DNA of 64,000 nt from Oikopleura dioica (taxonomy: Eukaryota > Animalia > Chordata), in contig OU015569.1 of NCBI GenBank assembly GCA_907165135.1, forward strand, positions 12,400,001 to 12,464,000. The letters are read 5' to 3'. Below the pieces are notes generated by a model, which was not told the DNA's origin, did not search any database, and saw nothing but the letters and a program-made list of their open reading frames with translations. Shown here in pieces: positions 17,928 through 58,874 of this stretch. Position 1 is the stretch's first letter. Every line of letters begins with the position of its first letter. Both the position numbers and the translations under genes were made by a program.

Positions 17928-20686
17928 TTAAGAATTGTCTTTTCTGAGTTTGTAGCACTCGCCGTCGACTTCGATGATGTTGTCCTTTCGCTTCTGCTCG
18001 AGGAGTTCTTTCAAGTCGTCGTCTTCGATCAGCAGCGCCGGGTTGTGCAGCGAGAGCATTTTCAGCAGACTGCTCAGCCGCTCGAACTTGATTTCGTTCA
18101 TGTTCTGGATCATTCCGCGCACAAACACCCACGTCGCCTGAACACTCAAGTCAGCCTTTTTACGCTTTTCAATTTCACCTGGAATTTGGCCTCTTGCTCG
18201 GCCTTGGCTTTCTCCTGCTCGTTGTCTTCCGTGTCCATTTGCTCCTCCGGGCCGGCTTCGACCACGTCTTCGTCGTCCCTCACGCATCTATAGCCGTCTT
18301 CTTCTTTGATGAGGATTCCTTTGTGGACCCAGAACTGAAGCCGCTTTTCGCAGATTTCGCTGGAGACACCTGACAACTCTGCGATCTTCTCCAACTTCAG
18401 GGAATCGTGCTCAGAGAATAAATTCACCAGCACAGCCTAAAATCAAATTAGTTTTAGTAACAAAAACTTAAAATTATCCAACCTGAGTGGGAGTGACAGT
18501 AAATTCGCTCGTGGCGTCTCCAACAGTGATTTCCAAATTGACAGCTCCGATTTGATTGTCGTACTCGAGTTTCCTCTTCGCTCTAATTTCGCCGAATCGT
18601 TTTTGCGAGACCTCGATCTCTTCCTTGATTTCTTTTGGCAAAATCAAGCCTTCTTCTTTCCTATCGGCCGGGTGGACCAGCTCGGGCCAATACTGCTCCG
18701 AGTAAATCAGCGTCTTGAATTTTTCGGATCTCTCGTTGAAGCGGATCGTTTCGCGACTGTCTTTGATCATCACTTGCGGATCGCTCATTGCGTCGTCGCC
18801 CAGCTTGTTTCGAAGCTGATCCGCTGTGCGACTCAGGAAGGAGGGCAGAAGACGGTTCACTTCGTGCGTCTTGAACTGCTCAAGAAGCTTCTCTCCCAGC
18901 TGCTTTCTGTAGAGACCTCTGAATTGCTCCGCGTTCCCGAAGATTTCTGAAAAACAAAATTACAAATTTCCAATCGAAAATTAGGAAAAGCATCTTTCTT
19001 TCAAATGGTTTCAAGATAATAAAGACTTTCTTTTATAGCATGAAAAGCTTACCAATAAGATGATCCAGCGCATTTTGTCTATTATCAACCGCCAAGTCGA
19101 CATTTTCCATTGCGGCTTCGCGGCGGCGGCTTCCACTCAAAATCGTCTTCGAAGGAATCGTTGATGCTGTTTTCCAGCTCTTCGTTTCCGACCTGGTTCA
19201 TGATGTGGTTGATGATCACTTCCGCCGAGTCGATTCGCTTTCGAACGTATTTCTGAATCGGCGCGCAGACGATGTTCACCATCGTTCCCGTCGGGTCCAG
19301 GTGGTTCAGCGACTGGATCGTGAAGAAATAGAACTGGATGATCAATTCTGTAAACGCCCCGCCTTGAAGCAGCCGGTCGCGAATGCGCCCTTCCAAAGTC
19401 GACGTTAAATGGTCGCGCGTGTACTTGATCGACTTCTCCAAGCAGAAACTGAGTTCTTTGATGCCCGGAACCGAGTCTGGAAATAACTGGATCATGGTGA
19501 ACAGCTCGGGACGCCGCTCCTCGATCAGTGAGTCGATGACGAGCTCGTTCATCCAGGCAAAGTTGCGATCGCGGTCTTCGCTCGGGTCCAGTTCCAGCAT
19601 TATGTCCAGGTGCAGCTCGATCATTTCTGAATAAAAACAATGTCAATCTATAGATTCACCTTAAAAATTTTTAAATTTTACCTTCAAGGATATCTAGAAC
19701 ATTTTCTTCAAACATCTGAGCCACGACAATCACCAATCTTTTAAGATTTTCTTTCACAGCGTATTTCGTATGCATGGCAAGCAACTCCGAGTAGCCAAAA
19801 ACCGCCAACCGCGAGGTCACTTCCCTGTAGCTCGCAAGTCTCTTTCCCAATTTTTCTTGAAGGAAAAAGATTCTTTCTTCGTCGCGGAAATCTTCCTCGC
19901 TGTCTTCGAACTCGTCGCTTTGGAAAAAAGTGGAGAAAAGGTTGATTCTTTGGGCGATGTCGTCCGACTGGTTGCAGTAAACATGAAGAGAAATGAACAG
20001 GCGGATGAAGTCTTTTCTGGGCTCGGCAACCTGTGTTCAAAACCTGAGTCAGGGTCTAAAATAGCTCTGATGAAATGCTCCTTTTTTTTGAAAATATAGC
20101 CGCAAAAATAGCCGCAAAATAGAAAAAATGCTACGCTGCTTTTCATTAAAGCTCTTTTAGACCCTGACTCGGGTTTTAGACACAGTTTTCCAAGCCCAAG
20201 CCTTTGTGCTCAACTTCGAAAGCGTGCTTTTTGCACAAAGTCCGGAGAACAACTCCAAAAGCCGAAATCGTATTTTGAACAAGAAATGTCCGCAGCCCAG
20301 TCTTTCCAAGAAAGCTCTTTTCCACTCGCTCGTCGAGTTGATTTTTCAGAAAATCCATCGCCTCGTAAAAACCGACTTCCCAGTTTCGCTCTTGCATCTC
20401 TCTTGCCATTTCAACGGCGGTTGATTCTGCCACGATTTTGCTCTTTTTTCGGCTCATTTTTTGGTCTTTTTAGAAATTCGAATAAATCTTAATAATGATT
20501 CCCGCCGATTTCCTTCAGAGCTTGTCCAAAAAGCGCTAGAACTTTCTCCTCCCCCTCTTCACCGCCAGTAATTTTCCTCCAATCGTCAAGCAGCAATTCC
20601 TCCTTCGTCAAAACGCAGTCCGGGCTTCCGACAATCGCCTGGATGATCCTTTCCCATCCATCAGTCAAATCTTCCTCTTTTTCCAT
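17928..20686 (-). CDS. ANAPC2: Anaphase-promoting complex subunit 2 (cullin-like)
   Basis: RLLQGGAFTELIIQFY...LDPTG, EWKPPP...LDHLIEIFGNAEQFRGLYRKQLGEKLL, C-terminal WVFVRGMIQN...IEVDGECYKL. One unresolved +1 shift near 19125. Confidence 0.9.
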
Positions 20687-20689
20687 TTC

Positions 20690-21004
20690 TCTTTTTCCAA
20701 GAATTATTCTCTCAAAAATTTCAAACTCGAAGCGGCGCGGCCAATCAGCGCTCCCAAATTATTCTCAGACCAGTTTTCTTTCTTTCACCGCGTTTTCGAG
20801 CCGCTCATCCCTTTTTTTTAATAGGAATAAGGAAAAATAGTTCCTGTGACTGATTTACAGAGAAAGAATACAATAAAAAATCTTAAAAAATACGCCAAAA
20901 ATGTATTTTCTAATTTTCATTTCTGTAAATTTTATGTCAACTTACAATTTTACTGTACAAATACTAAAAAGCGAAAAAAGTTCAGAAAAAAAGAAACTTT
21001 AAAA
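20690..21004. promoter_or_regulatory. Probable bidirectional promoter between ANAPC2 and 4E-BP
   Basis: Head-to-head starts about 320 bp apart; GC-rich island with CCAAT (ggccaatcagcg) at about 20740. Confidence 0.45.
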
Positions 21005-22870: not shown

Positions 22871-25800
22871 ATGAGTACAGAATCGGCTTCCAGCTGGGAA
22901 CGAGTTCCGTCCGACTACGACATTGGTAAGTCTGGATCCGATTTAGGAGCATTTTTGGTAGCGACTTCTTTATTGCTTCTGTCGGAAATAAAGATTAGAC
23001 ATTAGATAAATGACTTGGCTTCATTTGAGCGGGAAACTAAGGGCGTCACTCTGAGACACCTTATTTTTACGCTCAATATGAAGTCTAGTTCTTTAACTAG
23101 TTCCTAGACTTTATGATGGACAAAGGCGATAAGGATGTGACTATCTTGGGTGTTTGAATCATTCTTTAAATCGTCCTCTTTGTCGAAAATTAATGAATAA
23201 TTGTTCAGTTTCAGTGTCATCGCCTTCAACTTCTCTCTCCCGCGCCGACTCTCCGAACTCAAGCTGCTCCGAAGAGCCTGAAATCGCGCTGCCTCTTCCT
23301 TCATCCTCCAAGAAGATCGTGATGGAAAGAAGCAAAGAAACGCGACCGATCTTCTCGACCTTCGAAAAAGCGCCTTCGCTGGATCCTTTTTCGCTGGAAT
23401 GGAAAACACGACGAGAAGCGGCGATCGAAGAGCTTCCGAAGCTGACGTCCGAGATGATCGAAGCGACGCCGTTTTCGAAGATGCAATGGAGAATGGTCTT
23501 TTTATGCTTCGTCGGAGGCGTGGCAGATGGCATCGAACTAATGTGCATCTCCTTCGTCTTGCCGCACATAAGATGTTCCTTCGCGCTCTCCGCTGTTCAG
23601 AACTCGCTTCTCTCTTCCGTCGGCTTTATTGGACTTCTTCTTGGTAAGAAAAAAAATTAATATCTCTTAAGAGAGAAGCCACAAAAAAGATATTCATTAT
23701 GAATTTTAGGAGGTCTGGTTTGGGGCTCAATCGGCGACGCAATCGGCAGAAGCGCGACTCTCTCGCTTTGCATGGCGGTGAACGGCATCTTTGGCCTTTT
23801 GACGGCTTTTTCGACGAGTTGGTTTTCAATCCTGCTTTGTCGATTCATGGCCGGAGTTGGCATCGGCGGCTCTGGTCTCCTCTTCACTTACGTCTGCGAA
23901 ATCGCGCCCAAGCGGCGGGTTGGCTTGTTTCTCTCGATTCTGGCGACGAGCTGGATGCTGGCGAATGTTCTAGCCTCGATTTTGGCGTATTTAATTCTTC
24001 CCTTCGAGCTCGTCGTTGGCTCCTGGCGTATCTTCATCACACTCTGCACTTTACCTGCCATCTTTTCTTCAATTTTATTCATGACAGCTCCAGAATCTCC
24101 CAATTGGTTAGCGTCCCAGGTAAACATGGCCACCCTTGATCTCCCAAAAGAGCTCTTTTAATGCTTTTTGTTTAGGGACGAGTGACCGATGTGATTTCGT
24201 CGTTGACCGCCTTTTTTCCTCAAAAATCGTTCAAGCATTGTAAGAATCAGCTTCTTCTTTGAATTCATTTCTAACTTCGTTCTAGTCAAAACTCTGCAGC
24301 CATTTGAGAAACTCGCCTCTTCTTCACCAGTTTCTGTTTCGACCTTTCTTTTCGAAAACCTGAATCTCTCCGCCTCCTTCAAACAACTTCTCAGCCCGCA
24401 GCTCATCAAAACAACCGGTAAGCAGCGTCCCTCAAACTTGAATTAATGGACTTGGTGTAGTTCCACTTTGGACCATCAATTTCTGCATCTCGTTTGGTTT
24501 CTACGGCCTCTCGCTCTGGCTACCCACGATTTATGCGAAGATGGAATCGGCGCCAGAAGAAAGCTTTTGCCAAGTTATTTCCAGCAATTCAAGGAAACAG
24601 TTAATAATCACCCTTATTTTTTGCGTCATATAAAGCTCAATTTTCAATATAGAGCCACCCATAGAACTTTTGCTTTGCGATAAGAGGTAACTCTCTTAGA
24701 CAGGCTTTTCGTGATCGAGTAAAAACGGAAAGTGGATTTGCGAGTGGCCATAAGCGGCTGAAAAGTGCTGAGAGAGCGGAATGACGCGCGAATTAAAGAG
24801 GTTTATTAACTTGTCTAAAGTAGATTTGGCTGCACGAATCTGGACAAGAAGCAATATATGGACTCGCTCTTCTTCGCCTTCGTCCAGCTTCCAGGTAATC
24901 GGCGAACGTTTACGCAGTTGCGCAAATTCGCTTCTGACTGATCAGCAGCGCTTTGCCGCGCACATCCCCTTAAAACATCGCTCGTTCGTATGTTCCTTTC
25001 CAGACTCTTTTTACCTTTGAGAGTCTCTCCAGGAGAAAGCAGAATCGAGTCAGCTCTTTTCATCGTTTGTCCATTTGAAAGGTCCACTTCTCCTTCCTAA
25101 ACCATACTCTTATCATAGTCTAACAAAATGTCGACTTGTTAAAATCAAGAGGCCGCGCTTTCCGCGGCTTTTTTCCATGATTTAGCTCTCCTATTACCTG
25201 AAAACTCGCCAAAGATAGGGTTGAAAGTAACGTAATAATATAGTGACACCCTTATTTAATACAACAAAAAAACATTTTGGAATCAAGGAAGATAACAACT
25301 AATACTTACAATAACATAAATCCACTGGTTAATTCCGTCTGGATTTTCATCAATTGCGCAGTCGACAGCGACTGTTACTTGCATCTGATTTTGTCCCCCA
25401 AAGACGGCGTGTTTTCCCTTCGAAAGCGTCGAGTAAAACTTTTCAAAAAGAAAAGGCTCGTCTAAACTGCGCTGAGTGTCGATTTCCCAGGGAAGGTCCA
25501 TGACTGAGTCGCTTTTGGGCTTTCCAGTTTGGAATTCTTCCGAAGCGAAGTAATCCTTTATGATGGGTCCTGTAAGAGGTTTTTTTCAGGAACTGATTAA
25601 GTTTTCACCCCATCCTTGATCGAAAACGGAGTCTTTTTTATCCAATCAATCAAATTGTCAATGATCAACCTCGGCCTAATTCCTTGCCCAGATCGCGGCA
25701 CATAAATACTTTTTGGTATAAGATCGTCTTTTTGTCCTGTTTCCAGCATTTTAAATTGCCCATTTTTATTAACCGCGTTCTAAGTTACTAGTGCCCGAGT

Positions 25801-27268
25801 CGCTCTCTGATTTTAAATTATTCAGCTGGTAATTTAAATTCGCCCTTGATTCGAATATTGCCTTATTATCGATTTTATGCTGTTTTTCCTTGCAGTAGTA
25901 TCTCAATCCGTCCATTTCTTCGCCCTCGACTCTTTGACGCTCAACGACGAGGCCGATGGAGTTGGCGGATCTTCTCGGCGAATGGGGAATCTTCCCGGGC
26001 AGCAAGAACATTTCCCCTTCTTTGATCGGGATTGACTTTTGCTGGCCTTTTTCTTCGACGACGAGTTCCATTTCCCCCTTGAGCTGCCAGAAGAGCTCCT
26101 CACCTTCCTCTAAGTGAAAGTCGTCGCGTTGGTTTGGCCCACCGACGAACATCACGTCGAGTTGCGTGTGATGCATTAGTTTGTTGCAAACGGGCGGAAC
26201 GAAGGACGATTCGTGCGCTTGTCTCGGTTCGAACTCGCAAGTCGAAAAAAATGATCGGAGAAATACGCATTCTCGTTTGATCATTTGCGATTCATTAATC
26301 TCTTGCTGTACTTATAGAACTACTCTCGTAACCGAGTTTCTTTGAGCCACTGGTCGACATTGATGATTTCGAATTTCTTCTTGATTTCAGAACTGTTAGC
26401 GGAGAGTTCAATCTGCGCCATCAGCTGAAATTTTAAGCATCAAAGCTGCAGTTTTTTTTATCTGTTTTAACCTGAGCGAGTGCTTCTTCGTGGTGACGAG
26501 CCTTGCGCACGAATGGCTCACTTCCAGAAAGAGGTGATTTCTGGCTCATTCTTTCCTTCTTCGATCCTCTTTCTTTTCTGTTGAAAAGTGGTGCTAGGAT
26601 TAGGATTGTTTTTACGATAGAGAGAGAGAGTAAGAGCGAGTGGGCGTATCACTTCGTAACATTTATTCTTCCTTGACGATCTGTCGCTCCTTCCGCTTTC
26701 GATCAAGGCCATAAATCGGCAGTTTCATCCTTGTTTTGCTCTTCCCCTCAAATTCTAATTCAGGCAACTTCATCACGATGACGCTTCTGGACCGAGTTGG
26801 CCCGCGCAAGATTCTGGCCGTTTCTTTATTCTTCAATGCGTTGGTGACACTTGGCTTACTGTACTCCGCATCGGCGTGGCAGTCGTTTTCGTTGTCGATA
26901 CTGTTTTCCGCCTCGAGTGTTTTCAGCTGGAACTCGCTCAACGTTGCCAATACCGCCTTCATGCCAGTTCGAGTTCGATCCTTCGCCACCGGCTCCTTCA
27001 ACGGTAACCAGCCAAAATATTCTTGAAAAGACTTTAAATTACATATCAGCTTCGAACCGACTTGGCGGCCTGTTCGGCTCTCTCCTGATCGGCGTCTTCA
27101 TCGAATCCGGCTGCGGCTACTCGGTGCTCAGGTAAGAAAAGTGAGGTTTTAGTTTCGCTTATTCGCAAATTCGCATTTGCAACTCGCCCGATGGATCAAC
27201 TCCTATTTAGCCTGTTCACGATGCTGATATTGGGGGCCATTTGCTCGACTCTCTTGCCCAAATCCTGA
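22871..27268 (+). CDS. SV2/SVOP-like major facilitator transporter, multi-exon
   Basis: [77 protein letters not shown] motifs; large intron 24895-26763. Confidence 0.88.
24910..26549 (-). CDS. HAAO: 3-hydroxyanthranilate 3,4-dioxygenase, nested in the transporter intron
   Basis: [63 protein letters not shown] plus the C-terminal second cupin. Start may instead be ATG 26421. Confidence 0.93.
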
Positions 27269-33033: not shown

Positions 33034-33134
33034 TTTCTGGTCACATTGGTACTCGCGCCAGTGTTTTAGATTCAGCTCTAAAATGAATTATTACTCGACG
33101 AAAATGCAAATTTGAGACTCACTTTTTCCAAATC

Positions 33135-34163: not shown

Positions 34164-37100
34164 TTAAATTAGTTTGAGCTCGATCCTTGAGTTGATAGAG
34201 GAGTCGTCCCAGTCCGTCACATCCTGGTTTGGAATCGGAACGAAGGAGTTGTCGTTTGCGTTTTCATTCAGCTAGAATTCCGTCTAGAAGAGTCGAAGAA
34301 GGTGCTCTTTACCTGGTAGAGAATGTATGCCGAGTAAGTGGCGACTCCTTCGGAAGGCGAATGGACCAGCCGTTTCAGATCGCTCTGAAGCTCTTCTTTT
34401 GATCGAACAACGGAGAGGACGTCCGGGATCTTGAACAAGAGCATTTTTTCTGAATGAGAACGAATGGAACTACCTTGATGAACTCTGCTATGATTCCAAG
34501 AGCTTCTCGCTGGCACATGGGCGAGTCTTTTGGAAACCTGCGCCTCTCTCCCTCCCCAGAGAGCGAGACAAACTCTTGTAGGTCTTGGACGAGATCGTCG
34601 AAGCGGTCCGGGCTCGTGTACGCTGCCACCAGTTGCTCTCGAATATTTTCATCCTAGAACAAATTTTTCGTAATTTTTTCCTACCCGTCTATTTTTTTTG
34701 TACCTTGACGAAAGTGTGCAAACAGGCGAGAGCGCGTTTTTTCAAAGTGTGAAGATCCAAATGAGCGTAAATCGGTGCGTACTCGGCGGATAAATTCATT
34801 GTCTTGAATTTGGCTCTTTTTTTAGAAATTTCGATCGTCCAATCAGAAGCCTGATGGCTTGATGGAAAAATTTGTTATTGAAAGACACAAGGATAGAAAA
34901 TGAAGAAAAACCATTTCCTGAGCAAGTAAGTCGCGAATAAGCGTAACTGCTTTGTTTTGGTAAATGATTGCGCGATTCTTCTTGTTGAGTGAGAGCGACG
35001 TCAAAAGCCCCAGCGCGGAAATAAGGAAATCGCAGGCGAGACCTGGGTTCGAAGAAGCTTCGCTTTCCTTCATGTCGATCTCGAGAATCGCCATTTGGAC
35101 TCGGGTGAGTTTGATGAGGAGCTCGAGGAGGCCGGACTCGCCGATCTCGTCGCGAATCGAACGAGCATCGGAGGGCAGGTTTGAAGAGCAGTTTTTGATC
35201 AAGCCTGTTTAGGACTTCTTCTGAAACTCTTAAACAACACTTTCAAACAGAAAAAGTCCCTTTCCTAAAAGCGGAATCGCCAGTCGAACATGCTCGTCTG
35301 AATGATCCGAGCTCATCGTCGCCAAAACTCTCTTCGCTAGCGCACTGGCGTACTTGATCCCGTCCTTTTCCAGGAAACATAGTTTGTTGTGCTTGAAGTT
35401 CGCGGTCAGATTGCACAGCATTCCCGCGGCAAGGATTTGCGAGTTCTTCATTTCTTCGTCGTTGTTTGCCAAAATTGCTCGGCCGATCTTAAGTAAAACA
35501 GTCATTATCGGGGATGTTGGGCGCGTAGAGTTGCAAATTTTGTGAACTAGCTGAGCTGAGCTATCTGAGGTGTCTGAGGTGTCTGAGCTGTCTGAGCTAG
35601 CTGAGCTACAGCTCAGCTGAACGATTTTGAGGTGAGGGTCAGCTCAGCTCAGCTCAATGGTTCTTCGAAATGTGCCAGCTCAGCTCAGCTAGCTTAGTTT
35701 CAGAAATCGTCAGCTCAGCTCAGCTCGATTTTGAAAAAAAAACAGCTCAGCTCAGCTCAGTGGTTTCTAAAAGAAGCCAGCTCAGCTCAGCTCAGACGAA
35801 TTTCGACCTCAGCTCAGAAAAAATTTTCAAAAATTTGCAAATCTGATAATCTGAACTTGTCTTGTTCCCTAAATGATTTCTGCCTCTAAAAGTGAATTTT
35901 CACCTGAATAAGAGCATCACAGTTGTCCTCTTGTTGCCGATCGGACAAGTTGCGAAGCGTAATCAAAATGCGCTCGCGAATTTTAACGCTCGAGAATTCT
36001 GCATAAACGGCCATGCACGACTCCTGCGCCCCCTTTTCCAACAACATTCGCTTGAGATCGTCTTCCGTCGACAAAATCGCCAGGAGATCGGCAAGTCCCG
36101 TCGCCAGCGAAGGCGTGTTGCCCAGACCAGGGTTGCGCATTAGCACTAGAACTCGTTCGACGCCGGTCCTTGTTCGCGCCATTCTGATTCTCGACTTGGA
36201 GTCTTGGCTGCAAACCAAGATCAAGCTGCTCAAAGCCAGAAGAAGGATTTTGGGGTCGAGGCTGTCCAAAAAGCCGGTTAGGATTTCGATCAACTCGTGG
36301 GCTCTCAACGGAGCTGCTATTTCGCCGCCAAGTGATTTCATCAATTTGTTGAGAATCGAGAGACAGTTCTTGATCGTGTCGACGTCTTGGCTTTGGCTCT
36401 TGTATTCTTGCTTGAGAATGTAGGTGATTGAGTAGAAGAACTGGCTGCGGAAGATGATAGATCGGCCGAGAGGATAGGAGGCGAAAATGTTCAGAACTTT
36501 GAAAAGAATAACGATTTTTTATTCAAAAAAAAGAATAGAGAGAAAACGAGCTTGGTTATTTTTGTTAAAAACAACTGAGTCAGGGTCTTTCTGGATCCTG
36601 ACTCAGGATTTCTGAACAGATTGCCGCTGAGCTTAGCAGCCTGAGTCGGGGTATGAAAGAGCTGAAATGAAAAGCCGCACAGCGGCTTTTTTAAAAATGA
36701 AGCCGCAAAGCGGCTTCGCCGGAATAAATTTCTAGATTTTTATCGTAATATTTACGAAGCCGCTTTGCGACTTCATTTTTGAAAAAGCCGCTGCGCGGCT
36801 TTTCATTTCAGCTCTCTCAGACCCTGACTTAGGTTTTCTACACAGTCTGCTGAGCCCAGAACTACCGAGTCTAGTCTTTAGTTTATATCTAAAAATGATG
36901 TTATCCTTAACTTTGAGCGCCAGAATAGAATTGCTGGATCTCGTCCAGGCGACATGCAGCAATGCCGGGCAGAGATCGAGGCTGCTGATCAAGACGGTAG
37001 CGAAGCTCTCCGTCTTGGCCAAGTGCATAATCTTCCTCATGCTGGCCGAGCACTGCTCCGCGTCTTCCGAGTAAAGCATCTTGACGAAGCTGGGCAAAAG

Positions 37101-37875: not shown

Positions 37876-39770
37876 TCAGAGCAATTCGGATTGGGAGTGT
37901 ATAATTTCGTTGTCGCTGCTGTGAGTGTGGCGGGTGGAGTTGCTTTTGTCGTGGTTTTCGCTGAGATTGGGCGGCGTGAAACGCTGCGGCGGCCCCTTTC
38001 CTTCCGAAAATTGGCTCAGCCGATCAATGATCTCGTCCAGCTGGTCTCGGTGCCGGATCAAGTCGCCCACTACGTTTGGAATCGGCAGAACAGTCTTGAA
38101 ATTTGTATTTAATAAGTCGCTTTTCAAGCTCATTTTTACCGGCAAGTCATGTTCCGACGCTTCTTGGAGTTTTTCTAGCTTCTTTTCTAGCAACGCCGCT
38201 TTTGCTTCAAAACTGATACTCGACTTCTTCAGCTATTTTTTGGAAGATGTTATTATTGAACTGAGAAAGAGTGATTTCTAAGCTCGGGAACCTGTCTAGA
38301 AAGCCTGAGTCAGGTCTTGCTTCTGACCTGACTAAGCTCTACTAGACCTGACTCAGGCTTTCTAGACCTGACTCAGGTTTTCTAGACCTGACTCAGGCTT
38401 TCCAGACCTGACTCAGGCTCTCTAGACCTGACTCAGGCTTTCTAGACCTGACTCAGGCTTTCCAGACCTGACTCAGGCTTTCTAGACCTGACTCAGGCTT
38501 TCTAGACCTGACTCAGGCTTTCTAGACCTGACTCAGGCTTTCTAGACCTGACTCAGGCTTTCTAGACCTGACTCAGGCTTTCTAGACCTGACTCAGGCTT
38601 TCTAGACCTGACTCAGGCTTTCTAGACCTGACTCAGGTTTTCTAGACCTGACACAAGCTTTCTAGACCTGACTCAGGTCCTCTACACAGGTTCCCAAGCC
38701 CAGAGTGATTTCATACCTCTGAGACTTTCAAATGCGTTTCTTTCAGTTCCAGCTCCAGTTTTCTATTTTTCACTCTATTATTAAATTTTTACTCAACTTT
38801 TAATTTCAGAAAAAAAAAACCTCAGGTCATTAATCTCTTCGTCTTTGAGCGAGATTTTCTGGCGGAGGCGGTCGTTTTCCTTGGCGTGATCTTGAAATCC
38901 TCGCCGATCCTTTTTCTTTTCGTCGATAATTCCCTAAAGAGCTCCTTCAATTCTTCAAATCCGACGATTTTCGTTTCCCATTCGAAACACTGTTCTTTTG
39001 AAAATTACCTGGATCATCGCTTGGAACTGTTTTCGATCCTCTTCTTTTCGGAAGCCAAAGCCGTAGACGTTGCATGGCTCCGGCGTGTTCAGTTGGACGA
39101 ATTTGGAGGAGGTGCAGGCGACGATGGTTGCTGCTTGGAGCGTGATTTCCTCTGTTCGTGGATTCAAACGATTTTGATATCAGAGCGACTCAATTACCAA
39201 TCTGAGTAAAAAAACCTGAGTCAGATTCTGAAGTAGCTTAAAATCTGAGTCAAGCTCTTAAAAAGGTAAAATGAAAAGCCGCATAGCGGCTTTTTTAAAA
39301 ACGAAGCCGCAAAGCGGCTTCTCAAGTATACGGTATACTGTATACCTATTTTAATCGTTATTGAACTCCTCAACTTCTTTGCGGCTTCGTTTTTAAAAAA
39401 GCCGCTACGCGGCTTTTCTTTTTAGCATTTTTAGAGCCTGACTCAGGTTTTAAGCTACTTCAGAACCTCACTCAGGTTTTTTACTCAGGCTGCCGAGCCC
39501 AGAGTTGTTTGCTGTTGTTATGAAGACTGCTTATAATCTGACTGGGAATCGGGGATTTTAGTTTGAATCCGTTTCCTATCAATTTCGAAGCATCAGAAAC
39601 TCGTACATTTTGGCCTTCAACGACCACGTCAAGACCCGTTTTCTTGTCTGCAAGAGGTTGCCACGACTAGAAAGAAAGATGAACTGTCATCTTCTTTATT
39701 TCTCTCTTACTTTAGCGTTGTCGACGTCGACTCGGAAGACGTGGCAAGTGCTGGCCCATTTTCTGCTCAT
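37876..39770 (-). CDS. EVH1-domain plus coiled-coil protein (Homer-like)
   Basis: STCHVFRVD...SWQP...DASKLIEEITL...CTSSKFVQL...NVYGFGF matches the Homer EVH1 register; C-terminal coiled-coil exons. Confidence 0.75.
38341..38680 (+). repeat. Tandem array of 17 x 20-bp units (TCTAGACCTGACTCAGGCTT) inside MITE 38278-38703
   Basis: Units counted directly; 16 retain TGACTCA; no spacers. Confidence 0.95.
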
Positions 39771-41379
39771 TTTCGGGAGTTCTGAAAAAACAAGTTCTCG
39801 TTTCTTTGCAACTTCTTGTGGGAAACTGGCGAAGTAGCTGGGAAAGAAGAAAAAGAAGAAGGCAGAGCGCGCACGTGACTGTGATCGCGCGCTGAGCCCA
39901 GTTCAGCTCCTCGGATCAGATGCGCTCAATTAACCTTGCTTGCCTCTTCCGAACTCTCTTTCTTTCCCAGCTACTTCTCCGCTAGGTACTCATTCTTAGC
40001 CGCTGCTTTGAGTTTTGAACTAGCACTGCTTGTTCCTTTCTTTTTTTATTTTGACTTATTCTGAATTCATCAATTTTCAATTTCCAATTTCAAATTGCAA
40101 ATTTAAAGTTCGCGAAATAAAATTCAAAATAAATCCAAAATTGCTCTCTTTTTTTTTCTCCTCGAAATCACTCATTTTCTACCTTTGAAAAAAAAAATGG
40201 AAAAGACGGTTTAGCCGAGAGTACAGGCACTTTAGATTGTAGAGAAGCAAGTAGTGTGTTCTGTCAAGTACGAGTGACTGTAAAATCGATAGCGCTCTTT
40301 ATCATTTCTGCAAATTCGAAAGCAAGAAAGCAGCCAATATAGTCCTTTACCGACTTCATTAGTAAGTTCAGCTTCGAAGACGAGAAAAAGCGAGTTTGAA
40401 TTAAAGTTTGACGCTTTTTCGATTCTCGCTTGACACTTCAATTTGCGCGTATTGCATTCTGTCGCCAGTGATTAAAATTACAGTTGCTCCTGAATTTCGC
40501 GAAATTGATCGGAACAGTCGCAAATTACTTCAGCCAGATATCTCGCTTTCAAACGTTCAACAACCTATGTAGAAAACCTGAGTCAGGTTCTGAAAAGCTA
40601 AAATGAAAAGCCGCGTAGCGGCTTTTTCAAAAACGAAGCCGCAAAGCGGCTTCGCCAATGTTTCAAAATATATAGGAGTGATCGTTCAGCGGCGTTTCAT
40701 TTTTGCTCTTCAAAGCCTGACTCAGGTTTTCTACGCAGGTTTCCGAGCCCGACCTTTAGAAAATCAACAACTTTCTTCGTTAAAAATGTCAGATATGATT
40801 CTGCTGAAAATACACTGCTGCAATAATTCAATCACTTAGTATCAGTTTTCAATTTCATATCAAATAGAATCTGCTCTAAAAACCGCTTTCTCTTTGAATA
40901 TTCATCGAAAAATATAAGCCGATATTTGTACTTGCCATAAAGCCTCATACTCATCCGTATGAGAAGAATGAATGCATCTTCTCGCCCGTTTCTTTGCTCG
41001 TTCTTGTTTCTGCTCTTGAAGGTTAAACGCTAAAAAGCTGTTCGCTTAATTCCGTGTTTCGAGTAATTTCGTTTCTACTATTTTCGATAGACATATATCA
41101 AAGACAAGGCGGCGTTCTCCTGGGAGCTGCCACTTTTTCTGTATTGATTTGGAGAAAAGAAGAGCACTCTTTCAATCAATCAGCCGAGCACAACCGAGCC
41201 CGGCGTCCTCGCGGTCGTCCTTGCGGTTTTTTTCAAATTTGAAAACATAATTTTCTTCTTTTGAAAAATATCAATAAAAAACATTCAGTTCTTCTCGCTT
41301 AAAACAGTCAGAATGAAATCATGGAAGAGAACCAATCTTAAAGTCATTCCAAATCTTAACTAATCAATGATTCATTGGT

Positions 41380-42478: not shown

Positions 42479-45400
42479 CTACTTCCGCTGCTGCGCCTTC
42501 ATCAACTGCTCGATCACCTTGGCAGGGACGTTCTTGCCTTCGTCCGCCATCGCCTGCGTCTGCCCCGTCAACTAAATCCAGTTACAGTCAGAATTAGAAG
42601 AGAATGGCGCACCTGGGACAAGTAAATCGGCGCTAGTTGGGGATTCGCGTTGATCAGCACCATCACCTGCAGCTGGAAGGTTTGTTGCACCATCGTGTAG
42701 TTCTGAAGATGCCTTTTCAAATCGTCAGTTCCTTTGCCACTTACCGAGTAAGCGTCTTGTAGTTTCTTTTGCGCCCTATCTCTTTGTTTTTGCGTTTCAG
42801 CGAGAGCCGCAGCGGCGATTTTCCGCAGCTCTGAAATCAAAACTAACCGACAACGAAGCCAGTCTCTTCCTTACCGTCTCGGCTAAGCGCGGCGTAGATC
42901 GAAGTCGAAGCCATCTTCTCGACCAAGTCTTCTGTGCTCATCGAGTCTAGCGAAGTATCTCCAGCGCCCGCCTGTTCTGCTTCTTCTTTCGCCTGCTCGA
43001 GCTCTGTGTGCCGCTGGATCACCACTTGTTGCAGCGCGTTGAGTTGATTCATCGAGTTCTGGAACTCCTGCGTAGCACCAATGATTTGCGTCAGCGCGTT
43101 CAAACTGAAATATAACAATTTATACTCTTCTAGTTTTATCCCTGTTTTTCGGCTCGGCAACCTGTGTAGAAGCCTGATTCAGTGACCTGTAAGAGCCTGA
43201 TAGAAAGCGGCTTTCGGCAAATTATCTTAGAGCTATCAGAATCCTGTCTCAGGTTTTCTATGCGGGTTGTCGAGCTCCGACCCCGTAAAAGTCCCTCGCT
43301 CAAAAGGTTAGATTACCTGGTCAAGTTGTTGCCTGACTGTGTGGTAGTCGGCTGGCTCTTCTTCTGCTGCTCCTTGCGCTTCTGCTCCTGAGCCTGTTTC
43401 AAAAGAACCTGTCGCTGTCGCTCTGCCTCGCGAGCTTGTTTCAAAAGCAGCTGCTGCTGGGCTACAATCAAAGATGAGGATACCACTTCGAAAGAAACAA
43501 CTACCTTGCTGGTTCTGGACATGGTAATTGTAGCCGTTTGTTCTTTCGGCTTCGTATTCGGCCCAGGCGGCGGCGCGTTCTTCCGGGCTCAGCTCTTCGC
43601 TTTCGATGTGATCCAGTAACGAGTCGTGCTAGTTTTTAAATGTTACTGTATTGGACTTAGATTCTCGTTGAAATTACCTCGTGGTACTTAGAAATTCGCC
43701 TAGCCCAGTTGCCCTGAAAGAGCAAATCGGCGAAGACGCCATCTTTCGGCTTTTTGAAGCGTTTTCCACCGTCGTCTTCCGTTTCAGGCGTGTTTTCGCA
43801 CTCGAACATGTAGAGTTCTTTCAAGTCCCCTTGGCTGAAGAAGCGGCCGACTTGCTGCTCGTCGAGCACGCGCTGTGCCAGCCCTTGCTTCTGCACTTGA
43901 CGCCGGTAGACTTTTTCTTCCATCGTTCCTTGCGCCACCAATCTGCGATTTTAAGTTTAGATGGTGGGTATTTAGCAGAGATGCTCTAGATTCTAGAGGC
44001 TAGAATGCAACCAACGAGCTTTCTTTTTGAGGCTTTATAGAGTCCGAAGCGATTAACTATACCTGTAAATGAAGACAGGTTTGGTCTGCCCGATTCTGTA
44101 GACTCGGAAGATGGATTGAATGTCATGCGTCGGATTCCAGGAAGCGTCAAAGATTACAACGCGCGTCGCCGCCACCAAATTCACGCCCAAGCAGCCAGCC
44201 TTCGTCGAAATAAGAAACAGACGAGATCGAAGGTTCAGAGGATCGTTGAATTGCCCGATGAACTAAATAATGCTCAAGAAACTTATTGACAGTATGAAGC
44301 AATTCACCTCGTGGCGTTTTCCTCCAGAAGTAGCACCATCCATTCTGAAGTAGTCCTCGTTCTTGACCCATTTCCCGGAACCAGCCGGCGAAGGGAGGCC
44401 ACCTTCGACGAGAGTAGTGCACTGCTGAAGGAACTCTTCGATCAAGTCCAGCGACATAAGCGACTGAGAAAAGACGAGCAGCTTCTCGCCACGCATCTCG
44501 CAAACGCGCATTAGTTCGAGAAGCACTTGGATTTTGCCTGAATAATTGATAGAATTAATAGCAATTGGAGTGACTAACTAGAGTGGTGGAGTCCGTTGAG
44601 GTCGACTTCTTTGCTGAGTTTGCCCCACCATTCGAGTTTGCTTCGCTGCGCGCTCTCGAGCGTTTGAAACTCGCCGATGTCTTCCTCTTCTTCGAGACCG
44701 CGCAGTTTATCATCGTTGCGTTTTTGGCGTCTTTCGGCGCGACTCAACTTCTTTTTCGGCTCCTCGGGCTCATCCAGCTCGTACTGCAGCGGCGCGTCTT
44801 CCCCGAAGTTGAACTTGTCGCTGCCTTCTTCGTCTGTCGAGTCCAATCCTGGATCGCCGTCTTCAAGAATCGCGATCTGAATCGACAAAATCAAAACTTT
44901 TATTCCATCAAGGCATCAGCAAATATTTATGATCCAAAGTTTTGAGTGCAATTTCACGTAAATACCTGTAACAGGTCTTTTAACATTATGAAACATAAAG
45001 AGATATCTTCATGAATTAAGAGCCTTTAAAAATTAGCTAGAAACACCTACAGATGCATCCAAATGCATTTAGATAGAAAATATACATTGATATAAATCTA
45101 AAAAGACCGACCTGTTCATCCTCGGAGTTGATGTTCTTTGCCAATTCCTCGAGATCGGACTCGGCTTCTTCGTGCTCGACGAAAAGATCCGCGAATTCTC
45201 GTTTGAGCGAATGCGTCTCCAGCAGCTTAGGATGCGTCCAAACACGCATCAGGTTTTGATAATCGGCAAAGAGGCCAGAAACGCCTCGACCTTGCTGGTT
45301 CTCCACTTTTTCGCCCTTGTTCGATACGTTTTCCAGATAAAACTAAAACGAAGGGAGTTAATAACTTTTGCTCTCGATTTTGCTTTAGTTACTTTGTAGA

Positions 45401-47925
45401 GCTCTTGCTGGAAGGAAGTGAGTCGTACGGAAATGATATATTCGTACTTTTCCGGCAAATGCTTCGACAGGACGTGGTAGTCTTTTCGCTGGACGCAGCC
45501 GGACAGGAGGTTATGCAGGACGTGTGCGCGACGCTTCATTATCGTCACATCGTACTAAATAACTCGAAAATTAAGGGCGTATCCATCGTTTTTTTACTTT
45601 TACGAGGTAGATATCTAAGATATGGGTTGGATATGGTTTTCTACTGAGGCAATAAAAAAGGGTGTAGGCGCGAGGGATGTTTTTGGCTTATTTGCACATG
45701 ATTCCCGCAAAGCGCGCGCTAATAGCTCCGGATTACTGATTCTTACCACTCATTCAATGATTCTCATTAAACCCCATGAGCGAAGTTTTGTAGAGAATTG
45801 TCTGGGCTTTTCAGTGAATGTAATTATAATTTAATATCTTGAAAAATGAAAGTGCTGAATCCCTTTGAAGTTGAACTTCTCTTTTCGGCCATAGCGACTG
45901 AATTACAAATGATAAAGAAAAGCTGAAAACTGGAAAAGAAAGAGGAGTGTCCGTAGATTATGTCACCAAAAAGATTTTTCAAAATATCTCAAGTCGAAAA
46001 CGAATGAAGCGCTCGTGAAGTTGCGCAAAAGTATGCTCGACAAGGTCCCTTAATTAAAAGCCAGAGAAAAATACGATGGAAGATCAAGTAATATCGTGTT
46101 GAAATAAACTTACGCTGGTAGAATCAGCATGTTGCCCGTTTAAGATTGGATTGACGAATCTGTTTCTGAACTCCTTCAGCGTTCCGAGCAAATTGGGTTT
46201 CACAAAACTGGCCATGCAGTGGTACTCGATCAAGTTGTTTTGCAGCGGCGTTCCGGTCAAAACGCAGCGGCGACGAGTCCGGATCTTTGAGAGTACTTTC
46301 GCGATCGCCGCTTCCGAGTTTTTGAGTAAGTGTCCTTCGTCGCAGATGATGATGTCTGGCCCTGGATCGAGGAGGGCCGCTTTCTGTGCCTTTTTGTATT
46401 TCGGCACGCGGGTCCGATTGCCCGTGGCTAACATTCTGTACATGTCGTAGCCCATCACCATTATTCCGCCCTGATTCTGCCAGCGCTGCAGTTCCTGGAC
46501 ACGTTCTTTCGGCGTCGGCGAGTCGTTGAGCGAGTAGCAGGCCAGCTCCGGCCGCTGCAGTTCGTCCAGCCACTCGTGCAGCTCGCGAAGCCAGTTGTGC
46601 AGCGTGTTCATCGGGCAGAGGACGAGCACGTTTTTGCACCAGTCCAGATGCTCAGAGCAGAGAACAGCCTGGAGAAAGGAAAGGGTTTGGATGGTCTTGC
46701 CGAGGCCCATGCAGTGGGCAAGGATGCAGCCTTGGCCGTCGCTGCTCTTGCTCCTGTCGACGCGCTCGACCATGTTGGCGAACATGAACTTGACGCCGCC
46801 ATTCTGGTGCTCTTTTAACCGCCGCGCTATCCGATAGTCGACTGCTACGCGCGGCTCGTGCTGCAAAACAAGCCCTGTTTTCTCGACGCCCTTCTTTTCG
46901 CCATCTTTTTCGTCCTCGTTGAGTTTCTTTGCTTCTTCCTCTTCTTCCTTTTCGATTTCGAGCAGTCGCTGGCGCCGGTCTTTTTCTTCTTGCTCCGCTT
47001 TCACCGTTTCTTCGGCCAGCGAGTTGACTTCGATGATTTTGCGCAGTTTGTGACGCGTGTCTGGAACTTCTTCTTTGGGCTTTTCGACTTTTGGCTTCGG
47101 CTTGCGGCCGCGTTTTTTCTTGATCGGCTCGCCATTCTCGTCTGTAACCGGGCTCGACAAAAATTCAAGAGGAAACCTTTAAATTTTTTCATCTTAAAAA
47201 TAAATCAAGCTCAAAAGAGTATTGCGAGCCCGTGTTCTAGTTCCACAGGCTTCTTCGCTTTTTTCTTCCTTCCCCTTTTCTTCCTCGGCGAGGCGTCTCT
47301 TTCCGAGTCCGAGTCCGATTTCGCCGCTTCTTGATTTTCGTCCACCGCTTTTCGCTTTCTGCCGCGCTTCTTCTTCACCGGTTTCTCGTCTTTTTCTTCT
47401 TTCGACTTTTCGGCTTCGACTTTTTTGGCTTCTTCGAATTCAGACTCGTCGTTTTCTCCGCTTGACGAGGTTCCTCCTGAGTTTCCATCGCTTTCGCTTG
47501 ATGTTATTGCAGAGTCGTCAGATCCTGAAATTTTTTCTGTATTTTTGGACATTTTTAAGAGGATTTTTGGCCAATTAAGAGAAGCTTTGAACATTTTTAG
47601 ATAATATCTAGACTTTTTTAGACATTGCTGATATCATTTGACATCTGCGACCAAAGTTTTGACCATTTTTGGACGTTTTAGGACATTTAAGACCACTTTT
47701 GAACGGTTTATAGAGGGTTATCAAACCAACCGATTTGCTTGTGCTGATTTTGATCGAGCTGCTCCTCTTCCTCCAACTTCGCGATCTCCCCATTGCTCGT
47801 CACTGCATCTTCGGCTGGATTCGTTCCTCCCAGCGCCACGGGAGTTTCCACTACTGGGCCCTTGTTTCATCAGTAAGAACAACAATAATATAGCACGAAG
47901 AACTTACGATTGTGTCGGTGTCCAT
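42479..47925 (-). CDS. ATRX: ATRX SNF2-family chromatin remodeller (no ADD domain)
   Basis: [49 protein letters not shown]...[49 protein letters not shown]. Confidence 0.93.
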
Positions 47926-48106: not shown

Positions 48107-49091
48107 TTAGGCTTCCTCGAGTTCTGTCTTTTTTGGGCTCGCTATTTCGTATTTGAAATTTTTACGCTCCGCCGATTTCTTTCTACTTTATAATTATCGA
48201 AATATATATTCAGTTGACGCGTCGGATTTTCAGGCTTTCTTTATTTCAGCGACCCTTTCCAGAACTCCGTTGCAGTCAGCTGGATGCAAAAACACAATTG
48301 GTTTTCCGTGCGCTCCGATTTTCGGTTCCTGAAAAGAGTAGTTGAATTTTAAGGGGGTAGAAGGCGATTGACCTCATTTTCGACCAACAAAGGAGTTAGA
48401 CAAGGGTTTCAGCGAGTTACTAACTATGCAATGTATTATAGAACGGAAATCAAGAGTCTTGATTCAAGACTCTTGAAACGATTTTATACTAGCCTTAAAT
48501 TAAGACTCTTAATGAAGTGACACCCTTATTTGAAGGTAGGACATTTACCAAGAGAATGAAGCTTATTTTAAGAAGAAAAATAAGGACCCTTAACACACTG
48601 TCACTAATTGACACCTGTCAATAAGTTAATTCTAAGAAGAGCAGTTCCCTTGAATTACCTTGTTGAGAAGTCTAATTCCAGCGTCGGCGCAAGACTTCAT
48701 CGCTGCTCGAATGTCGTCGACTTCGATGCAGATGTGATGAATGCCGCCTTTTTTGTTCTTCTCCAAAAAGCCGGCGATCGGGCTTTTTTCGCCGAGAGGA
48801 TGGAGCAATTCGAGCTTCGTGTTCGGCAAGTTGACGAATACGGTGGTGACTCCGTGCTCTGGAAGGTCGTCTTTGCCGGAAACTTCGGCTCCGAGCGTGT
48901 CGCGGTAAAAAGCAGTAGACTCGTCTAAATCTGGAACGGCGATTGCGACGTGGTTCAGTCTTCCTAAAAAACGAGGTTGGAAAGAAGTGTCTCTCTTTTT
49001 GGAATTTTGACTGACCAAGAGTCCAGAGCTTCGCGTTGCTCCTTCTCGCAGCGGAGAGACAAGTTGACTGGAGCACGCGGCGAGACAGCAT
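48107..49091 (-). CDS. MCEE: Methylmalonyl-CoA epimerase, mitochondrial
   Basis: LNHVAIAVPDL, KLELLHPLG, GGIHHICIEVDDI, KIGAHGKP.VFLHP; terminal exon TELEEA* reached through a GA-AG intron. Confidence 0.93.
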
Positions 49092-54490: not shown

Positions 54491-54531
54491 GGTAAAAAAA
54501 AGGTATAAGAGAGAAGAAAACCCCTTTTTTC

Positions 54532-57128: not shown

Positions 57129-57242
57129 CTAGTCAATCTTTTTTTGAAGACGCAATTTCTAGCAGGTGGCAAGTGGTTTAGGTAAAAACGAAAAACATAT
57201 TTTGTGCGGCGATTTGACAGATAAATAAATTGACTAGTACAG

Positions 57243-58874
57243 TCATAGTTTCGAAGGCGACCCGGCGGCGAACGAGTTTGGCAAGAGATCTTTTTTGGGT
57301 TTGGCAGGTAACGAGTACAAATACACGGCGCAGATTACCAGCGCCGCGCCTGTCACAAACGAACTCTGTCATTTCAGTTCAACACATTTTCAAAAGATGG
57401 ATTCATTAAGACGAGAAGCCCTAACAGAAAGAGCACAAGGCTGTGTATTGAACTGTGCCTGTATTTGGAAGCCGAAGAAGATGACGGAAAGGATGGTGGA
57501 GACGATGATGGCTATGCTGGTTGCGAAGCCCTTGACAATGTTGTCCGCGTACTTGATGACGACGGCGATCAACAGGCCCCCGAAAGCCTGGTTGAAGACC
57601 ACAGCCAGGGCGATGCCGTTGAAGCCAAAGAAAATTCCCTGAAACAGTCTTTAGCGCGAGAAATAGAAGAAAAACCGAGAACGATGAACTCGGCTTTTTG
57701 AATTGTTAATTTTTCTAAAAAGAAGAGTCGCTTACTTTTTTGGCAATTTGTTCTCCGTCTTTGGCGATCATTCCAATTCCGGCGAGAACAGCGGCAAAGA
57801 GGCCGAGCTGTATGTTCCTCAGCCAAATGGAGACTTGTCCCGTCTTGAGGATTTTCTCAAGGTAGACGCCGGCGAAGCCAGAAAAGAGGCAGGAAATGAG
57901 GACTGCGGAGAAGCCAACGAGCCGGTTTTGCGAAGCGGGATCGACGGAGGACTCGCTCGTTTCGTGGCTTTGGACGATCGCCACGCCAAGAAAGAGAAGC
58001 AGCATCGAAATCCACTGCGTCCGCGAGAGCTGTTTCTTCAGCAGGGCGACGGAGAAGAGAGCAGTCGTCAGGATTTTCAGCTGGTAAGAAACTGAAAACA
58101 TCGATTTGACTTTTTACTTCTTGATTTAAAAAACGGGTGACACTATTTATATGATCAAGGAAACGCTCGCGGAGCCAGCTGAGCTCGGCAACCTGAGTGG
58201 AAAACCTGAGTCAGGGTTCTAAAAGAATAGAATGAAAAGCCTCGTAGCGGCTTTTTTTTATAAAAACGAAGCCGCGAAGCGGCTTCGCTAGTTAAAGTAA
58301 TTCATTGAGTTGGTAACTGGCGAAGACGCTACGCGGCTTTTCATTTTACTCTTTTAGAACCCTGACTCAGGTTTTTTACTCAGGTTGTCGAGCCCAGCCA
58401 CTCAGCAATAAACTTGCTCAAACAAAAACCGAAAAATCAAGTAGTTTAAAGTACCTTGAAAGGTAGCTGCTGGAAGATTGGAAACCGCCAGATAAAGCAG
58501 GTTGTTCTGGACTGTGTAGATGAAGCTGGGAACGGCGACTTTGAGCGTGTCCCAGGGCCGGTTGATGATCTCGCTGCTGATTTCGCCGTAGAAAGAGAGC
58601 ACATTGCACTAGAACGGTTTGAGCTTAGGCGAGAAAGGCTGGAAAGGTACCTTGTGGCTGCCGACGAGGAGAATCAAAGAAGAAGCGACGATTTTTAAGA
58701 TTTCGCAAAAGAACACTGCTGCGGTATTGAAGAACTTGTCTCCCTAAAACTTTGCTAAGGAGATGTTTTTAAATAGAGAATTACCTCGTCTGTTCGTGCT
58801 TTGCGCATCGTGAGCACCAGGGAGGCATTTTGAGCGACTAAAAGGACGAGGGCGAGCGTCTTGACCCATCCCAT
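57243..58874 (-). CDS. SLC35A: Nucleotide-sugar transporter, SLC35A2/A3-like
   Basis: [67 protein letters not shown]. Confidence 0.92.

Follow-up and report, generated by a model that had tools for sequence, protein, structure and literature searches.

We analyzed a 64,000 nt stretch of the Oikopleura dioica contig OU015569.1 (hereafter, the window). The window is compact and gene dense, with a G+C content of 39–46%, and the minus strand carries most of its genes. It has recognizable exons of HAAO, MCEE, a nucleotide-sugar transporter (SLC35A), ANAPC2, and ATRX, and it also contains an armadillo gene and an EVH1-like gene. An earlier note on the window had listed 12 introns, all on the minus strand, that do not start with GT, and we found their coordinates, terminal dinucleotides, and inverted repeats to be as given there. 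Here we describe pairing between the two ends of these introns that is well above chance, and we favor, with moderate confidence, the reading that they are non-GT spliceosomal introns, mostly G(A/C)-AG, with a closing helix that aids splicing.

By their ends, seven of the listed introns are GA-AG, three are GC-AG, and two (armadillo intron i2 and HAAO intron c) fit no G*-AG reading; a G at +1, a base other than T at +2, and a 3' AG are found together in 10 of the 12. As controls, we curated 24 GT-AG introns in the window by donor consensus, acceptor, and frame compatibility, several of which are backed by Pfam continuity or by relatives. Because placement of junctions by codon-usage score alone was hopelessly ambiguous and was rejected, an intron entered the control set only when its donor was strong, its acceptor plausible, and its frames compatible. 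The sequences of relatives were contigs from public metagenome assemblies (L numbers below) at graded distances from the window. The HAAO relatives comprise a conspecific at 97% nucleotide identity and others at 92%, 82%, and 75% protein identity; for the armadillo gene, the identities are 86% (nucleotide) and ∼60% (protein). The armadillo contigs were reached via one 102-amino-acid fragment in a representative-sequence search, and a metagenome scan with SLC35A as the query returned no larvacean locus.

Pairing between the ends of the introns

We calculated RNAduplex energies between the first 25 and the last 30 nt of each intron. The mean for the 12 listed introns was −13.9 kcal/mol, or −13.8 over the first 22–25 and last 27–30 nt (individual values, −8.3 to −27.2 kcal/mol), and when the 5' and 3' partners were permuted among them the mean was −7.2 ± 1.0, with none of 5000 permutations as low as the observed value. 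The individually weakest stems (armadillo i1 and i5, HAAO a, and ANAPC2 a) rank 2–5 among their own 22 mismatched pairings. The 24 GT-AG introns had a mean terminal pairing of −4.0 kcal/mol, equal to that of their own permuted control, which bears out the earlier statement that most GT introns lack such stems. The difference between the non-GT and GT sets was significant in a Mann-Whitney test (p = 2e-6 against all GT introns and p = 7e-5 against the long ones). The comparison of end pairing among GT introns, non-GT introns, and controls that had been proposed as a check of the stems, run here within the 64 kb window, thus reveals an excess in the non-GT introns, and the helix is absent from GT-AG introns that lie in the same genes.

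The non-GT introns are never shorter than 60 nt, whereas the GT introns have a mode of 41–55 nt. One alternative is that the helix works as a general "zipper," bringing long introns down to a size that suits a spliceosome tuned to ∼45 nt, in which case it would depend on length and not on the donor. The lengths of the two sets (12 of 12 non-GT introns of at least 60 nt, and mostly 41–55 nt for GT introns) fit this explanation, as do a long GT intron (18947–19089) with an A/U-rich helix near its ends and a stem-bearing GT intron in the relative L007 (described below). However, the nine GT-AG introns of at least 60 nt (75–559 nt) have no terminal helix: none pairs beyond −7.4 kcal/mol, which is weaker than every non-GT intron (p = 7e-5). 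The stem-bearing GT intron of L007, moreover, is only 52 nt long. We consider an effect of length alone distinctly improbable.

The stems had been described as starting 2–6 nt inside the 5' end and 5–9 nt inside the 3' end. This holds for the set, with median unpaired spacers of ∼3.5 nt (5') and ∼6.5 nt (3'), except that the duplex optimum of armadillo i5 is fuzzy. The further statement that the two offsets sum to 7–9 nt is true of only 5 of the 12 introns, the range being 7–13 nt. When non-GT introns of up to 150 nt were folded at full length, the helix closed the whole intron in six of seven; among four GT introns folded in the same way, only one (apc_gt2) had an A/U-rich helix near its ends.

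The two sets also differ in the sequence of their ends. GAAA is the usual start of the non-GT introns, and the A at +3/+4, which belongs to the U1-complementary consensus, is mostly kept. Their last 8 nt are A rich (AAACAG, AAAAAG) and lack a pyrimidine tract: the fraction of A at −8 to −3 is 0.49, versus 0.22 in GT introns, and the pyrimidine fraction at the 3' end is 0.42 versus 0.63 (p about 0.002). An exonic AG lies immediately upstream of 11 of the 12 introns, as had been claimed, but it is not distinctive, given that 15 of the 24 GT introns also follow an AG (Fisher p = 0.11). Taken together, the listed introns form a distinct architectural class, consisting of an exonic AG, an intron start that is usually GAAA, a helix of 6–13 bp whose 5' arm begins 2–6 nt inside the intron, a loop that can have any length (possibly with nested MITEs [miniature transposable elements with inverted repeats]), the 3' arm, and a purine- or A-rich tail of 5–9 nt that ends in (C/A)AG. 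A window-wide scan for the pattern G[ACG]...7-bp stem...AG gave thousands of chance matches and was discarded.

In five of the introns (armadillo i5, HAAO b, HAAO c, MCEE, and SLC35A), a GT lies 5–7 nt inside the intron, within the 5' arm. Together with the listed acceptor, this GT is a possible in-frame donor in four of the five (not in HAAO c), and it is unused where this could be tested. Pairing might hide the internal GT, though its presence in 5 of 12 introns is near chance expectation.

The individual introns and their junctions

Four of the listed introns lie in the armadillo gene. Intron i4 (35205–35264) is a 60 nt GA-AG intron with a 13-bp helix, GGGACTTTTTCTG (35248–35260)/CAGAAGAAGTCCT (35211–35223), and spacers of 4 and 6 nt; in the fold, this helix closes the whole intron (z = −3.2). 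Orthologous introns in which the helix is kept were found in L062 (GC-AG), L001 and L063 (both GA-AG), and L064 (GG-AG). Over the five lineages, 91% of the cells of a 9-pair helix are paired, versus 27–53% in a slid register, and the pairs vary in identity (pair 1, GU/AU/GC; pair 7, UA/UG/CG; pair 8, AU/UG). The interiors cannot be aligned between lineages, and the basal 6–9 bp are the only conserved part. We rejected a reading of these introns as mirtrons, which are short, fold into a hairpin of ∼22 bp beginning at the splice sites, and have one conserved arm of ∼22 nt, given that only these basal pairs of i4 are conserved and that most of the introns are far longer than mirtrons. In L064 (178–205), the 3' arm of i4 is tandemly duplicated (TGAGTCC TGAGTCC), which creates two alternative pairing partners.

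Intron i2 (36497–36910; 414 nt) has the helix AAGGATAAC/GTTATTCTT. Its ends are TT-AG in the listed placement, whereas a 1 nt slide inside the 8 nt direct repeat TCAAAG/TT gives GT-AA, and a family-A-like MITE is nested in its interior at about intron positions 41–284. The orthologous intron in L063 is a 61 nt GC-AG intron at the same phase-1 site with the helix CGGATA/TATCCG; the two helices share the core GGATA/TAT(C/T)C, in an unchanged register. For both i2 and i4, relatives carry an orthologous intron in the same codon phase.

The other two stems of this gene are weaker. Intron i1 (37324–37532; GA-AG, 209 nt) has the helix ACAGATTT (37523–37530)/AAATCTGT (37330–37337), with 2 nt (5') and 6 nt (3') unpaired, and no in-frame GT-AG alternative was found within ±36 nt. 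Intron i5 (34803–34917; GA-AG, 115 nt) has a weak, G-U-rich helix, TGGTTTTT/AAAGAGCCA. It is missing from L001 and L063, as indicated by gap-free protein alignment, and present in L062 and L064; in L064 it is a 142 nt GA-AG intron with a perfect 10-bp helix, GTGGTCAGAT/ATCTGACCAC.

A further intron of the armadillo gene (35488–35903, minus strand) is a 416 nt GT-AG intron in the window, full of GAGCTG repeats and without a helix. At the same position, L001 (621–678; 58 nt) and L063 (start about 770) have GA-AG introns; one orthologous intron has therefore changed its donor dinucleotide. Arrays of GAGCTGAGCTG and its complement form long palindromes in two of the armadillo introns (at about 37370–37410 and 35550–35800, minus strand) and in an intergenic region (about 4880–6060).

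HAAO contains three of the listed introns. HAAO a (25737–25888; GA-AG, 152 nt) has the 6-bp helix CAGCAT (25877–25882)/ATGCTG (25744–25749), 6 nt and 7 nt inside its ends, and has no in-frame GT-AG alternative. Its orthologue in a sibling species (L006/L004) is also GA-AG, with the helix GAGAG/CTCTC at −8 to −12 from the 3' end; the register from the 3' end is the same, and three pairs are altered on both sides. HAAO b (25570–25675; GC-AG, 106 nt) has the helix GAGGTT/AACCTC, with 3 nt and 6 nt unpaired. HAAO c (26218–26339; 122 nt) has the helix CTCGGTT/AACCGAG plus inner pairs, and its ends read AA-AG as listed or, slid by 1 nt within a 3 nt repeat (AAG), GA-AA. In the sibling species (L005/L006), the orthologue of c is GG-AG with the helix TCGGCT/AGCCGA, in which a T-A pair is replaced by a compensatory C-G pair. 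All three HAAO introns are missing from L007 and L011.

The JGI contig L004 bears directly on the HAAO junctions. Its exons are 100% identical to those of the genomic contigs L005/L006 of the same sibling species, and an upstream GT-AG intron and the orthologues of introns c and b are precisely gone from it, whereas intron a is retained. We read L004 as a partly spliced transcript of the sibling species. The orthologue of intron b starts GCGGAGGTG in genomic L006, and the complementary DNA (cDNA)-like L004 joins GGAATTAG exactly to GACCG, so that the GC site has been used and the GT at +6 ignored; the orthologue of c has been removed exactly. The retained intron a (L004, 762–859) has the weakest helix (5 bp), and it may be slowly spliced. 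A 47 nt GT-AG intron (26425–26471, minus strand) joins this region of HAAO to a coding exon further upstream, which ends at 26472; because the sibling transcript reads through there, the ATG at 26421 probably does not serve as the start codon.

The remaining listed introns lie in four other genes. That of the EVH1-like gene (39152–39575; GA-AG, 424 nt) has a 10-bp helix, GGATTCAAAC (39561–39570)/GTTTGAATCC (39160–39169), with 5 nt and 8 nt unpaired and a MITE copy nested in the interior. The SLC35A intron (57366–57458; GC-AG, 93 nt) has a 12-bp helix, CAGTTCAATACA/TGTGTTGAACTG, spacers of 3 nt and 9 nt, and the boundary direct repeat ACAG. Aligned to the CMP-sialic acid transporter (6oh2/6oh4), its flanking exons end at residue 296 and resume at 297 without a gap; the 40-amino-acid piece downstream is a weak match (E = 0.74) in the right place. 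In MCEE, the intron (48128–48259; GA-AG, 132 nt) has the helix GGGTCGCTG/TAGCGAGCCC, which contains a single bulge, spacers of 4 nt and 7 nt, and ends that resemble those of family-A MITEs. The upstream exon stops at residue 128 of human MCEE (3rmu_A, 134 amino acids) and the six-codon last exon corresponds to residues 129–134, and GT donors at −6 and +6 are therefore disfavored. ANAPC2 a (20443–20512; GA-AG, 70 nt) has an interrupted helix, TCGGC...TCATT/AATGA-GCCGA, and the 3' end GAGCCGAAAAAAG; the stem is weak (fold z = −0.4), and one in-frame GT alternative, which would delete 10 codons, remains for it. ANAPC2 b (20012–20201; GC-AG, 190 nt) has a 16-pair terminal helix and is essentially one MITE copy. 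We also found a candidate that was not in the earlier list, in ATRX (47142–47237, minus strand; GA-AG, 96 nt), with the helix CGGGCTCG/CGAGCCCG; it was placed by reading frame, and its flanks are of low complexity.

Protein homology had been said to place all 12 introns. Eight are backed by homology or by a transcript, HAAO b and c by the exact removal of their orthologues from L004 and the six others indirectly, whereas armadillo i1, EVH1, and ANAPC2 a and b were placed by reading frame only, because their exons match nothing in PDB or Pfam (the flanking exons of armadillo i1 and the N-terminal exons around both ANAPC2 introns have no PDB or Pfam match, and the pieces flanking the EVH1 intron have no Pfam match). 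Gap-free alignments with intron-less orthologues fix the junctions of HAAO a, b, and c and of armadillo i5 to the codon.

If the junctions were misplaced, nearby GT-AG sites would really be used and the stems would be chance matches or internal repeats. Candidate sites exist: there is an in-frame, stop-free GT at +5 to +7 in armadillo i5, HAAO b, HAAO c (not with the listed acceptor), MCEE, and SLC35A, and there are other in-frame GT alternatives for EVH1 and for ANAPC2 a and b. However, L004 takes the GC site over the GT at +6 in HAAO b and has lost intron c exactly, the alignments to orthologues and PDB entries lack the gains or losses of two to four codons that the alternatives would cause, armadillo i1, armadillo i2, and HAAO a have no in-frame GT-AG option, and the permutations put the stems above chance. 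The use of nearby GT-AG sites, which had been named as the outcome that would count against the stems, is thus contradicted wherever L004, the orthologues, or the PDB alignments allow the in-frame alternatives to be judged, and we regard misplacement as very improbable. Judged from the sequences, the listed introns are most likely genuine non-GT introns.

Conservation and origin of the helix

As many as five lineages of larvaceans share the register of the helix, and compensatory changes occur in armadillo i4, HAAO c, and HAAO a. Twelve non-GT introns of relatives, which had not been picked for the earlier list, have a mean pairing energy of about −12.7 kcal/mol, versus −5.9 for mismatched pairs, although they represent only seven intron positions, five of which are orthologous to listed introns. 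A conspecific contig, L065 (96.6% identical), differs from the window at 3 of 141 positions in intron ends, 18 of 239 in intron interiors (p = 0.034), and 9 of 550 in exons. Taken as a whole, these comparisons argue, in a small sample, for selection on the paired ends. An analysis in which stem positions were transferred between orthologues with free shifts was dropped: its null was inflated, since the whole class shares one register of pairing.

The earlier note had proposed that these introns arose from MITE insertions at AG-containing targets. The window holds an extremely dense palindromic MITE family, with ∼40 recognizable ends in 64 kb and the termini CTGGGCTCGGCAACCTGTGTAGAAAA...TCTACACAGGTTGCCGAGCCCAG (copies include 62842–62999, 58177–58399, 40561–40754, and 20012–20201, and one full copy has TCGA on both sides). 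Only one listed intron, ANAPC2 b, is a copy of this abundant MITE, and the proposal is not supported as a general account. Positions 4–186 of the 190 nt of ANAPC2 b have over 50 matches across the window; the element has the ends CTGGGCTCGG...CCGAGCCCAG, the terminal helix consists of the MITE inverted repeats, and AAAG is repeated at the end of the exon and the end of the intron. The helix of the ATRX candidate is the family-A inverted-repeat sequence. Look-alike ends, GAGCC(C/G), occur in MCEE, ANAPC2 a, and the ATRX candidate. The MITE copies in armadillo i2 and EVH1 lie in the interior and are unrelated to the terminal helix. Nine of the 12 introns have no second copy within the 64 kb window, and the arm sequences of the listed introns other than those just named are unique. 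Sequence similarity thus establishes a MITE origin only for ANAPC2 b, with the putative ATRX intron as one further candidate.

The offsets of the stems had also been interpreted as target-site duplications. This interpretation fails: apart from armadillo i2, the 3' spacers (5–9 nt) have no more than AG or AAG in common with the upstream exon, and because these tails do not match the exon ends we rejected the spacers as target duplications. The 3' spacers look like an A-rich acceptor motif instead. Direct repeats at the boundaries are 1–4 nt long; most are AG or AAG, as would be expected from the exon consensus as well. The longer or distinct cases are the 8 nt repeat of armadillo i2 and the AAAG of ANAPC2 b. 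Because many of the stem-bearing introns are lineage specific, an origin by insertion of hairpin-forming DNA is still plausible for the other listed introns.

One GT-AG intron of ATRX (43142–43504, minus strand) has a 3' end that consists of a MITE end followed by AAAAACAG, with no matching 5' arm; its tail is of the same type as those of the non-GT introns ANAPC2 a and MCEE. Elsewhere in the window, two neighboring stretches on the minus strand (15785–16350 and 17937–18947) resemble tandem paralogues and contain near-identical short GT-AG introns (16076–16119 and 18437–18482), each followed by the exon start gctgtg.

An insertional origin would allow a different view of the helices, namely that they are relics of hairpin-forming insertions (MITE or foldback DNA) and that the stem does nothing for splicing. 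ANAPC2 b is a whole MITE, and several introns are lineage specific (HAAO a, b, and c are not in L007 or L011, armadillo i5 is not in L001 or L063, and an exon-3 intron occurs in L001 and L063 only). A newly gained GT-AG intron of L007 also has a 9-bp stem, and at one site relatives have a weakly stemmed GA-AG intron where the window has a stemless GT-AG one. These observations are all as expected for relics. However, for nine of the 12 introns the window lacks a second copy, although ∼40 MITE ends occur in it, the arms of armadillo i4 and i2 are kept in register, with compensatory changes, at ∼60% protein identity while the interiors are unalignable, and within the species the intron ends are as invariant as exons. 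A purely historical origin of the helices is possible, but we think it rather unlikely.

A possible role of the helix in splicing

We infer that the helix acts in splicing. In the mechanism that we propose, the helix would close the intron and so bring a weak donor and a weak acceptor side by side, leaving single stranded only the nucleotides that the spliceosome reads; it would thereby replace the cross-intron recognition that normally comes from GT and the pyrimidine tract. For ANAPC2 b, the inverted repeats of the MITE would serve as the helix, and the duplicated AAAG target would provide the 3' AG.

According to the earlier note, the stem makes up for the absence of GT. A structural role is plausible, given that lineages share the helix in one register, with compensatory changes, and that the intron ends vary little within the species, but compensation in particular is not proven, as two introns of relatives illustrate. 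L007 has a lineage-specific 52 nt GT-AG intron (start about 654) whose donor, GTAAGT, is perfect; its ends form a 9-bp helix, AAATGGTGT/ACACCATTT, which lies 6 nt inside each of them and in the same register. In L001 and L063, i3, a GA-AG intron, forms only a weak helix. The helix and the non-GT donor may therefore both mark inserted introns, and the helix may be retained where splice signals stay weak.

These two introns weigh against the reading that we favor, as do several other points. Four of the 12 junctions (armadillo i1, EVH1, and ANAPC2 a and b) come from the reading frame. The transcript evidence concerns two orthologous introns (HAAO b and c) in a sibling species, and the GA-AG intron a is retained in that same transcript-like contig. 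The covariation sample is small: for armadillo i4 there are five sequences, five of the nine pairs are invariant, and a shuffle control was not significant (59/500). Finally, the two intron sets were selected differently, the GT introns by donor and frame and the non-GT introns by the author of the earlier note, and stemless non-GT introns in unmodeled genes may therefore be missed.

Introns of the same kind have been reported in O. dioica, where G*-AG introns (GA-AG, GC-AG, and GG-AG) make up about 11–12% of introns (Denoeud et al. 2010 as cited in PMC8008620; PMC7072748). The listed introns agree with them in dinucleotides, in their compact larvacean genome, and in keeping G at +1 and a 3' AG. 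PMC8008620 and PMC7072748 give dinucleotides and flanking logos, and we found no mention in them of a terminal helix, an A-rich tail, or a difference in length. In the literature that we searched, which did not extend to the texts of Denoeud 2010 and Henriet 2019, so that an earlier description is possible, no account of a conserved helix with a fixed register turned up for G*-AG introns of the Oikopleura type.

Another larvacean, Fritillaria borealis, has non-canonical introns that derive from MITEs and carry terminal inverted repeats and direct repeats at their boundaries; their positions are species specific, and they are read as transposon insertions tolerated by a modified U2 spliceosome (Henriet et al. 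2019, as summarized in PMC11282704 and PMC13326754). The introns in the window are likewise larvacean non-GT introns with terminal inverted repeats. However, the Fritillaria introns end mainly in AG/AC or AG/AT and have a YAY triplet before the 5' site and as the last three bases, whereas those in the window are G(A/C)...AG; we found no YAY triplets in the listed introns, even when they were slid by 2 nt to read AG...AC. In further contrast, only 1–3 of the 12 introns are tied to a repeat family here, and the helix is conserved across species.

More distant parallels are found in protists. The introners of Amoebophrya are non-canonical, with inverted repeats of 8–20 nt and boundary direct repeats of 3–5 nt; the hairpin has been proposed to join the exon ends, and a minority of canonical introns share it (PMC7789003). 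Amoebophrya differs in being a dinoflagellate, in having splice positions that vary relative to the hairpin and multi-copy intron families, and in having no detected U1, whereas the listed introns have a narrow register and keep G...AG. In the nonconventional introns of Euglena, a helix with spacers of 3 nt (5') and 5–6 nt (3') has been shown experimentally to be a splicing code (PMC12501133; PMC11282704). This geometry is very close to the medians found here (∼3.5 and ∼6.5 nt). The Euglena helix has a CAG/CTG core and the introns have no conserved terminal dinucleotides, whereas in the window the arms all differ, 3 of the 12 begin with CAG, and 10 of the 12 keep G...AG.

The likeness to Euglena allows the proposal of a helix-measuring, non-spliceosomal route of removal, as discussed for the euglenid introns. 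Spacers of ∼3–4 and 6–7 nt resemble the Euglena rule of 3 and 5–6 nt (PMC12501133), and armadillo i2 and HAAO c fit no G*-AG reading; however, 10 of the 12 introns keep G at +1 and the 3' AG, and most keep the A at +3/+4, all of which are spliceosomal requirements. We find such a route scarcely credible, and we retain the reading of the listed introns as spliceosomal introns aided by a closing helix. It is conceivable, and we put it forward only tentatively, that larvaceans have a second, structure-based form of intron definition, in which a helix with fixed spacers (∼3–4 and 6–7 nt) would be required for, and would position, the cleavage of introns without either GT or a pyrimidine tract. By analogy, and with the same reserve, such a code could be a convergent counterpart, in an animal U2 spliceosome, of the helix-plus-spacer code of Euglena, and it would explain how transposon-like insertions can turn at once into harmless introns.

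About 1 in 9 Oikopleura introns are recognized without GT by a single spliceosome, and this is not known to have a mechanistic explanation; a conserved, register-fixed helix is a concrete element that can be mutated. Such introns will be mis-modeled by gene finders that look for GT-AG plus a pyrimidine tract, and they could be predicted from their helix, GAAA start, and A-rich tail. If our reading is correct, it would link three phenomena that have so far been treated separately, namely the permissive G*-AG splicing of Oikopleura, the introns that MITEs have made in Fritillaria, and the protist introns that depend on a hairpin.

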